This document shows, in pieces, positions 45,647 to 45,868 of a stretch of DNA of 64,000 nucleotides (position 1 is the stretch's first letter; every line of letters begins with the position of its first letter). The position numbers and the translations under genes were made by a program. The notes beneath the pieces were generated by a model, which searched no databases, was not told the DNA's origin, and worked only from the letters and a program-made list of their open reading frames with translations. The stretch covers positions 62,001 to 126,000 of the IMG/VR virus record IMGVR_UViG_3300042473_001265, one strand, 5' to 3'.

Positions 45647-45675
45647 TTGACACAGAATGATAAATAACATACAAT
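45647..45675 (+). promoter_or_regulatory. sigma70-type promoter (with embedded ATAAATA) for leader 3
   Basis: TTGACA-N17-TACAAT. Confidence 0.75.
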
Positions 45676-45682
45676 AGGATTT

Positions 45683-45814
45683 ATGATGAACACTAATATT
45701 TTTAGCCCCATGCATCGCGTAACGACCCAGGCTCAGCCGTGGTCACGCGGTTTTGGCCGTGTCAAGAATATTACAGCGAATCACAGGGTCCGAGAAGAAA
45801 GCAGTTGCGCATAA
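45683..45814 (+). CDS. leader peptide 3 (43 aa) of a putative tRNA-operon attenuator
   Basis: MMNTNIFSPMHRVTTQAQPWSRGFGRVKNITANHRVREESSCA; AGGA SD. Confidence 0.75.
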   Translation: MMNTNIFSPMHRVTTQAQPWSRGFGRVKNITANHRVREESSCA

Positions 45815-45840
45815 CAGCAGTAACCGACAAACTTCAAGGA

Positions 45841-45868
45841 CCCTGGATTAAAAACCCAGGGTTTTTTT
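45841..45868 (+). terminator. attenuator terminator 3
   Basis: CCCTGG-attaaaaac-CCAGGG plus T7; CAGGGTCC (45784) pairs perfectly with GGACCCTG (45838). Confidence 0.8.

Follow-up and report, generated by a model that had tools for sequence, protein, structure and literature searches.

Leader-peptide transcription attenuators are found in the enterobacterial amino-acid operons trp, his, leu, thr, ilvGMEDA and pheA, in which a short promoter-proximal ORF is followed by an intrinsic terminator ahead of the structural genes, and by an antiterminator helix that shares one strand with the terminator. The position of the ribosome decides which helix forms, and the leader is enriched in runs of codons whose charged tRNA reports on the product of the operon. 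The thr and ilv leaders are already multivalent (Thr and Ile; Ile, Leu and Val). The element analyzed here, which lies ahead of a tRNA array in a phage, has the short ORF, the intrinsic terminator and the predicted antiterminator sharing a strand with it, and is most like the thr and ilv leaders. However, the genes downstream are tRNAs and not biosynthetic enzymes, the proposed inputs are 15-20 amino acids sampled once or a few times each and not runs of one to three amino acids, the mRNA is probably leaderless, the stop codon lies inside the antiterminator hairpin, and no anti-antiterminator (1:2) helix was found, so that absence of translation should give read-through and not super-attenuation.

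Three other systems are close. In pheST, one of the attenuators of translation-apparatus genes, the pheM leader controls a component of the decoding machinery through codons for the cognate amino acid, but pheM senses Phe only and controls a synthetase, while the putative targets here are tRNA genes themselves, with many amino acids as inputs. T-box riboswitches also give conditional read-through of a terminator in response to tRNA status ahead of translation-related genes, but they bind uncharged tRNA directly through a specifier codon and the T-box sequence, need no translation and sense one tRNA each. No T-box hit (RF00230) was obtained at the Rfam gathering threshold in the window (the whole stretch of 64,000 nt analyzed here, taken from a 340-kb IMG/VR contig), no Rfam family matches the leader, and at E <= 10 positions 45470-45900 gave nothing apart from a weak tRNA match to an upstream remnant. 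In pyrBI-type coupling attenuators the outcome likewise depends on the distance between leading ribosome and RNA polymerase as a kinetic race, but there a close ribosome prevents the terminator from forming, whereas here a close ribosome should permit it by removing the antiterminator. tRNA genes are the most common translation-related genes in phages, yet how their expression is controlled is largely unknown, and in our literature search no paper was found that describes control of tRNA genes by leader-peptide attenuation or attenuators of phage tRNA arrays.

Sequence Features of the Leader

The initial annotation stated that codons 1-33 of a short ORF, here called leader 3, encode exactly the 15 amino acids of the downstream tRNA block, that Leu, Tyr, Asp, Glu and Cys are absent from these codons and have their tRNAs in other blocks, and that an octamer in the ORF pairs perfectly with one overlapping the terminator stem. 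This observation proved to be correct. Every prefix of 28 to 37 codons has exactly the set M, N, T, I, F, S, P, H, R, V, Q, A, W, G and K; Glu first appears at codon 38 and Cys at codon 42, while Leu, Tyr and Asp never occur. ARAGORN detected 16 tRNAs in the block (Trp, Arg x2, Ala, Gln, Ile, Ser, Asn, Thr, Lys, His, Met, Phe, Gly, Val and Pro), which is the same set of 15 amino acids. The weak tRNA-like remnant in the block (Rfam, 32 bits) was not called by ARAGORN, so the description of the 16 as intact tRNAs is fair. The coordinates of all features are given in Table 1.

Table 1. Features of leader 3, its surroundings and the two paralogous cassettes (window coordinates)
Feature	Position	Strand	Description
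Promoter	45647-45675	+	Sigma-70-type, TTGACA-17-TACAAT, 11/12 match; ATG 7 nt after the -10 hexamer; invariant in relatives
Leader 3 ORF	45683-45814	+	43 codons plus stop, MMNTNIFSPMHRVTTQAQPWSRGFGRVKNITANHRVREESSCA; codons 1-33/37 form the sampling zone
Hairpin 1	45694-45773	+	Inside the ORF (codons 4-30); possible pause or timing structure
Antiterminator, 5' arm	45784-45791	+	CAGGGTCC, in codons 34-37
Antiterminator, 3' arm	45838-45845	+	GGACCCTG, overlaps the 5' strand of the terminator
Intrinsic terminator	45840-45868	+	ACCCTGG (45840-45846), loop, CCAGGGT, T7; 7-bp G+C-rich stem
56-aa ORF	45885-46055	+	First gene after the terminator; basic helical protein, motif ..HTLTxEQxxxLIxxKxERA..
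236-aa gene	46270-46980	-	Convergent, between leader and tRNA array; 86% identical in L003, absent in L007, L008 and L011
Promoter-like site	-10 ends at 47001		10/12 match; too close to serve tRNA-Trp (47002)
tRNA array (block 3)	47002-49369	+	16 tRNAs covering 15 amino acids
Internal promoters	47415, 47883		12/12 matches, inside the array
tRNA-like remnant	47721-47788
Permuted tmRNA and next terminator	49393-49747	+	Closes the transcription unit
GOLLD RNA	45008-45472		Upstream of leader 3
Degenerate tRNA(CAT)	45553-45625		Upstream of leader 3
Leu, Tyr, Asp, Glu and Cys tRNAs	39185-43448
Leader 1 cassette	38631-38820	+	ORF 38657-38764, MNTIHSLLSSLCISNTGLSASLRLEQFRIPNGWHS; same terminator module; precedes Ser(UGA), Arg(UCU), Leu x3, Cys and Gly(UCC)
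Leader 2 cassette	42528-42707	+	ORF 42562-42660, MITQITFTANNTPAIYEIAYERDCPRGLCHCS; arms GGGGTCTTTG (42638) and CAAAGACCC (42678); precedes Glu, Tyr, Asp, Met, Ile(UAU) and Asn

To determine whether the match is common among random segments, as had been proposed beforehand, we estimated its chance frequency in several ways. Among 5,000,000 random 33-mers of the amino acid composition of this phage's long ORFs, 36 match the set (about 7e-6 per segment), 1 of 13,706 windows in the long ORFs matches, and among 41,780 stop-free six-frame windows there is one other independent hit. Allowing any prefix of 15-43 codons gives 6.6e-5 per peptide, and with 36 candidate + strand ORFs in the tRNA region the family-wise probability is about 0.002. 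This is unusual, but on its own it is a post hoc coincidence of moderate strength.

The minimum-energy fold of the leader pairs the two octamers (-60.6 kcal/mol, z = -4.4). It contains hairpin 1, followed by a second hairpin which is closed by the octamers and holds the stop codon in its apical part. RNA folded up to the terminator loop also forms this antiterminator, and the terminator folded alone gives -14.8 kcal/mol. Hairpin 1 is almost invariant in close relatives, and thus gives no covariation evidence. Two further pairings were considered. AGGA at 45676 might act as a Shine-Dalgarno site sequestered by GGGUCC, and folds started at 45676 give this alternative in the related loci L003 and L007 (L numbers designate loci retrieved in the searches). 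However, the ATG lies only 7 nt after the -10 hexamer, as in most of the family, so the AGGA is probably not transcribed and this three-way switch was rejected. A trp-like region 1 (GACCCAGG at 45724) pairing with the 5' arm is not supported, because position 45724 varies (G/A/C) without compensation in L007 and L008.

Profile searches with the 43-aa peptide gave no match in Pfam or in PHROGs, and a search of 5.8 billion protein sequences returned only one small unnamed cluster of 4 close relatives. The 56-aa protein also has no Pfam or PHROG match.

Conservation Among Close Relatives

L003, L007, L008, L011 and L012 carry the same cassette at 87-95% identity, while the flanks diverge or are replaced. 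In L007, L008 and L011 the order is tRNA-Met(CAT), promoter, leader, terminator, 56-aa ORF and tRNA-Trp-Arg-Ala-Gln, without the convergent gene and without any other sigma-70-like promoter. In this way, the link between leader and array is ancestral and the 236-aa gene is an insertion, so we rejected the view that this gene refutes any link between leader 3 and the tRNA block. The block is nevertheless not a simple operon under this leader, because in the window the convergent gene lies in between and the two internal promoters supply Ser-Pro independently. In L003 the 56-aa ORF is replaced while the cassette is kept.

To test whether the ORF is likely to be translated, substitutions were counted among the close relatives. 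Over codons 1-38, pN is about 0.02 and pS is 0.08-0.20, while pN of the neighbouring 56-aa ORF is about 0.09. There are 7 synonymous and 3 non-synonymous events with 25:89 sites (binomial, p about 0.002), which suggests that the frame is read. An alternative is that the ORF is not translated, the element being a structured sRNA or a processing signal of tRNA precursors, or that the set match is pure chance. The highly structured fold, the nucleotide conservation of the leader, which exceeds that of the neighbouring ORF, and the presence of other unexplained structured RNAs in the same region are in line with it. However, the excess of synonymous changes, the open frame in all 50 distinct leaders described below against about 3 stops per shifted frame, the fixed distance from the -10 hexamer to the ATG in most promoters, the lack of an Rfam match and the corrected chance probability of about 0.002 make this alternative very unlikely.

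Inspection of homologous leaders also showed that the exact set is not conserved as a rule. In L003, the nearest diverged relative, Gln16 is changed to Leu (CTG), although its array holds the same 15 amino acids and no Leu tRNA.

Paralogous Cassettes and a Family of Leaders

In addition to leader 3, two paralogous cassettes of the same design were detected in the window. Leader 1 scores 92 bits with the covariance model. Leader 2 carries the codons TAT, GAG, ATA, GCC, TAT, GAG, CGT and GAT just before its 5' arm; all six amino acids of its block are present in it, and its homologues in L085, L087 and L097 also precede Glu-Tyr-Asp. However, leaders 1 and 2 contain many residues of other blocks, and leader-1 and leader-2 type cassettes have a strong promoter directly after their terminator, before the tRNAs.

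Exact-pattern scans of the viral collection with the terminator module, the covariance model and a blastn search for leader 2 together gave at least 50 distinct leaders in about 50 contigs of uncultivated phages. Of these leaders, 46 have a promoter of at least 10/12, with the ATG 6-10 nt after the -10 hexamer in 36 of the 46 and a 47-58 nt UTR in nine. The ORF has 30-57 codons, and its stop codon lies 24-34 nt before the 3' arm and 6-26 nt after the start of the 5' arm. A same-strand tRNA follows within 1.7 kb in 43 of 43 cassettes with enough sequence (median 412 nt), and homologues of the 56-aa protein follow the terminator in about half of the cassettes. In 30 of these 43, including every leader-3-type cassette, no promoter of at least 10/12 was found between terminator and first tRNA, in a scan that recognizes sigma-70-like sites and not phage-specific promoter types. 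In the window, however, a 10/12 site ends at 47001 and two 12/12 promoters lie inside the array.

A GGGTCC-like 5' arm and the terminator are conserved across the family, and the apical hairpin differs in sequence but is always present. Nascent-RNA folds give the antiterminator as the minimum-energy structure in all four subfamilies, including the leader-2 type with its different arms (GGGGUCUUUG/CAAAGACCC), so both sides have changed together. The peptides differ almost completely between subfamilies. Peptide motifs conserved within subfamilies (WS., DRTPE, RVREG) overlap conserved RNA helices, so part of the peptide conservation may act at RNA level.

These data also bear on the possibility that the 43-aa peptide is itself the functional product, a stand-alone microprotein with its own promoter and an ordinary end-of-gene terminator, which merely sits next to tRNA arrays, the 8-bp complementarity only stabilizing the 3' end of the mRNA. 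The conservation of the peptide among close relatives (pN below pS), the strong terminator, the presence of another promoter after 13 of 43 cassettes (leaders 1 and 2 among them) and the replacement of the 56-aa ORF in L003 could be explained in this way. However, the RNA arms, the stop position and the terminator stay fixed while the peptide changes, 30 of 43 arrays have no other recognizable promoter, the fold of the nascent RNA masks the terminator unless something opens the hairpin, which is odd for an end-of-gene terminator, the peptide belongs to no Pfam or PHROG family, and composition tracks the array (see below). We consider this possibility doubtful.

The terminator sequence occurs 33 times in bacterial genomes, of which only two are cassettes, both on short metagenome-bin contigs (one labelled Polynucleobacter), the other 31 being plain terminators; none of the 33 has a tRNA array downstream. 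Searches of GenBank phages in both near and distant mode returned no similarity. A metagenome scan with back-translated peptide patterns found nothing, and a 20-mer DNA scan gave two unrelated coding hits (L016 and L017). Loci retrieved through the neighbouring 378-aa protein (L020-L079) yielded only one further cassette, L027.

Amino Acid Composition of Leaders and tRNA Arrays

To determine whether the leaders sample their arrays, one representative per lineage (65% identity) was analyzed, asking whether each amino acid with a tRNA downstream (up to the next cassette or the end of the data) is present in the leader before the 5' arm, and whether amino acids are present whose tRNAs are only upstream or absent within at least 6 kb. 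Block amino acids are present in 319 of 330 cases (265.8 expected, z = 8.2), while non-block amino acids are present in 31 of 58 (46.1 expected, z = -5.2), although flanks were often truncated and some non-block assignments may be wrong. In a comparison of reading frames of the same DNA, 308 of 315 block amino acids are present in frame, against 254 and 264 of 315 in the +1 and +2 frames (2.2% absent against 19.4% and 16.2%), so the effect belongs to the peptide and not to base composition. Coverage combined over 14 lineages clustered at 45% identity gives p = 5.6e-7. Within the leader-3-like clade, exact permutation of leader-to-layout pairings over 9 lineages gives p = 3.6e-4, and p = 0.003 without the window's own lineage. 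The lineages are related and none of these statistics is phylogenetically corrected; single-linkage clustering at 35-50% identity chained nearly all leaders together and was not usable for defining independent lineages.

Individual cases fit this tendency. L131 is a second exact match, with 17 amino acids, and L132 has all 20 amino acids in both leader and array. The L091 leader gains Leu(TTG) and Cys, and its block holds Leu(CAA) and Cys tRNAs, while the L087 leader lacks Ala, whose tRNA sits in the upstream block. Cys is present in 16 of 19 leaders whose block has tRNA-Cys, at differing positions. However, exceptions exist besides Leu16 in L003: Asp8 in L081, L091 and L097, Tyr in the L100 lineage although its Tyr tRNA is upstream, Pro and Leu in L115, and the L088 leader, which lacks Cys, Val and Trp although those tRNAs follow it.

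A generic translation-coupled attenuator should be considered, with the same architecture but controlling read-through into the tRNA array according to overall ribosome pace or availability, in which the amino acid content of the leader would not be tuned to the array and the exact set would be a coincidence helped by the ordinary diversity of 40-residue peptides. The breaking of the set in relatives, the kinship of the lineages and the lack of enrichment of leader 2 for its own block over its whole zone agree with this, and the diversity of most leaders is indeed ordinary for their length. Diversity alone, however, does not explain the coverage, and the frame-specific coverage, the depletion of amino acids whose tRNAs are elsewhere, the within-clade permutation and the retention of the rare residue Cys argue against a generic attenuator, which we regard as unlikely, though less so than the other alternatives.

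Proposed Mechanism

The best explanation, to which we assign a probability of roughly 0.6, is that leader 3 is a ribosome-mediated transcription attenuator at the head of the phage's largest tRNA array, and one member of a large, previously undescribed family of such cassettes in uncultivated phages with tRNA arrays. In this view, host RNA polymerase starts at the near-consensus promoter and the transcript begins at or next to the AUG, so that a ribosome can load as soon as the 5' end emerges. If no ribosome reaches the end of the ORF in time, the nascent RNA would fold into a long hairpin in which CAGGGUCC pairs with GGACCCUG, withholding the 5' strand of the terminator, and polymerase would read on into the 56-aa ORF and the tRNA genes. 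If the ribosome keeps pace, it would unwind or cover the 5' arm on its way to the stop codon, GGACCCUGG would be free to form the terminator, and transcription would stop at about 45868. Because the leader contains at least one codon for every amino acid whose tRNA is encoded downstream, and avoids those whose tRNAs are encoded in the upstream blocks, slow decoding of any of these amino acids would delay the ribosome and raise transcription of the array, as an OR-gate feedback on tRNA supply. The sequence anatomy, the alternative folds, the conservation of the design, the linkage to tRNA arrays and the frame-specific match between leader and array were established by the present analysis, whereas translation of the ORF, termination, the direction of the switch and the response to stalling are inferred from sequence without experimental support. 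Each amino acid is sampled by only 1-4 scattered codons, unlike the runs in classical leaders, and the promoters inside the array and after leaders 1 and 2 mean that read-through is at most one of several inputs to tRNA transcription.

The interpretation in the initial annotation, a multi-input sensor in which stalling at any one codon type allows read-through, is thus partly supported: the attenuator architecture is conserved and the sampling of downstream tRNAs holds statistically across the family in the reading frame only, but the exact set is a tendency and not a rule, and read-through upon stalling at any one codon remains an inference.

A broader reading, about as likely as not, is that phages with large tRNA arrays carry pan-amino-acid leader peptides acting as OR-gate attenuators, the leader encoding every amino acid for which the array supplies a tRNA. 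Depletion or cleavage of any one of those tRNAs by starvation, host shut-off or anticodon-nuclease defences would slow the leader ribosome and switch on the phage's own replacement tRNAs, and where an array is split into several terminator-bounded units, as in this phage, each unit would have its own leader tuned to its own tRNAs. If the proposed mechanism is right, it would extend attenuation from sensing one to three amino acids to sensing up to twenty, from enzymes to tRNAs as the controlled product, and into phage biology, where phage tRNAs are thought to compensate for codon-usage mismatch or for loss of host tRNAs. It is directly testable with short synthetic constructs and would offer a compact natural sensor of decoding speed for each amino acid, and the size of the family allows much stronger comparative tests than those made here.

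Codon Usage in the Leaders

At codon level, 32 of the 33 zone codons of leader 3 are read by tRNAs of its own block (p = 0.0036). The remaining one, TCA (Ser21), is read by tRNA-Ser(UGA) of block 1 and not by Ser(GCU) of block 3. For leader 1, 15 of 27 zone codons are read by its own block (empirical p = 0.0026), whereas leader 2 is not enriched for its own block over its whole zone (p = 0.17). Conditional on the peptides, synonymous codon choice across the family covers slightly more of the anticodons in the arrays than resampled codons do (417 of 483, against 400.4 +/- 6.0 after synonymous resampling, p = 0.0015).

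Other features of the tRNA region

In addition to the leader cassette, several other RNA elements were detected in the surrounding region. A GOLLD RNA (Rfam RF02032, 197 bits against a gathering score of 150), in which a tRNA-Asn(GTT) is embedded, lies immediately upstream of the leader cassette, and two promoters lie further upstream. At the other end, a permuted tmRNA (RF04321, 89 bits) with tag peptide ANANTGEVTVSGKNVKFSARTAQRHSLAV ends the tRNA unit and is followed by a strong terminator; it is conserved in L003, one of the related loci carrying the same cassette (the others named here are L007, L008, L011 and L012).

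Coordinates of additional features in the window
Feature	Position	Strand
Promoters after leaders 1 and 2	38899 and 42718	
Shared element after these promoters	38928-38960 and 42747-42780	
tRNA-Ser(ACT)	42407-42494	
tRNA-Ile(TAT)	44247-44336	
Promoters upstream of GOLLD RNA	44379 and 44548	
GOLLD RNA	45008-45472	+
Embedded tRNA-Asn(GTT)	45071-45145	
Hairpin motif	45489-45530	
Degenerate tRNA(CAT)	45553-45625	+
Basic helical protein	45885-46055	+
tRNA-like remnant	47721-47788	+
Perfect promoter	47883	
Region of this promoter and mini-ORF	47883-48020	+
Four tandem structured units	48091-48723	+
Permuted tmRNA	49393-49676	+
Terminator after tmRNA	49717-49747	
Porin gene	50186-51088	+

Two degraded tRNAs were also found, neither of which was called by ARAGORN. 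The degenerate tRNA(CAT) scores 19.9 bits with Rfam, while in L003, L007, L008 and L011 the same position holds an intact tRNA-Met(CAT), with compensatory changes in the T-arm and acceptor stem. The tRNA-like remnant (Rfam tRNA, 32 bits) lies between tRNA-Thr and tRNA-Arg(ACG), and is absent at the same junction in L007. Besides these, there are two unusual tRNAs, a tRNA-Ser with anticodon ACT and a 90-nt tRNA-Ile(TAT) with its anticodon at position 30.

Between tRNA-Lys and tRNA-His there are four tandem units of about 105-125 nt, each closed by a 17-20 bp stem (CCATATAARAACACAYT ... RRTGTGTTYYTATATGG). No Rfam match was obtained for them, so they represent an unknown structured-RNA family. 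A recurring hairpin motif, ACACAYTRAGCTGA..GGGCTG..ATGCCGCAGAYAGTGTGT, is placed before tRNA genes, both in the window and just upstream of tRNA-Trp in L007, L008 and L012, and might be a processing signal. The strong promoters that follow leaders 1 and 2 (the two paralogous cassettes) are each followed by a shared element, CAAACGATCGAGTAGYTG, of unknown role. After the perfect promoter within the array there is a 7-codon mini-ORF, ATGAAGCGAACAGCTAAAATGTAG (MKRTAKM), which contains two Lys codons and lies just before tRNA-Lys(TTT), although this may be coincidence.

Among protein-coding genes, a conserved basic helical protein of 51-60 aa (motif ..HTLTxEQxxxLIxxKxERA..), with homologues in about 20 loci, starts 9-35 nt after the attenuator terminator in about half of the cassettes, and searches against Pfam and PHROG gave no match. 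The phage also carries a Gram-negative porin gene (PF13609, E = 4e-26), followed by TctA-like genes, and one cassette-bearing contig (L163) is binned as Polynucleobacter, which together hint at a betaproteobacterial freshwater host.
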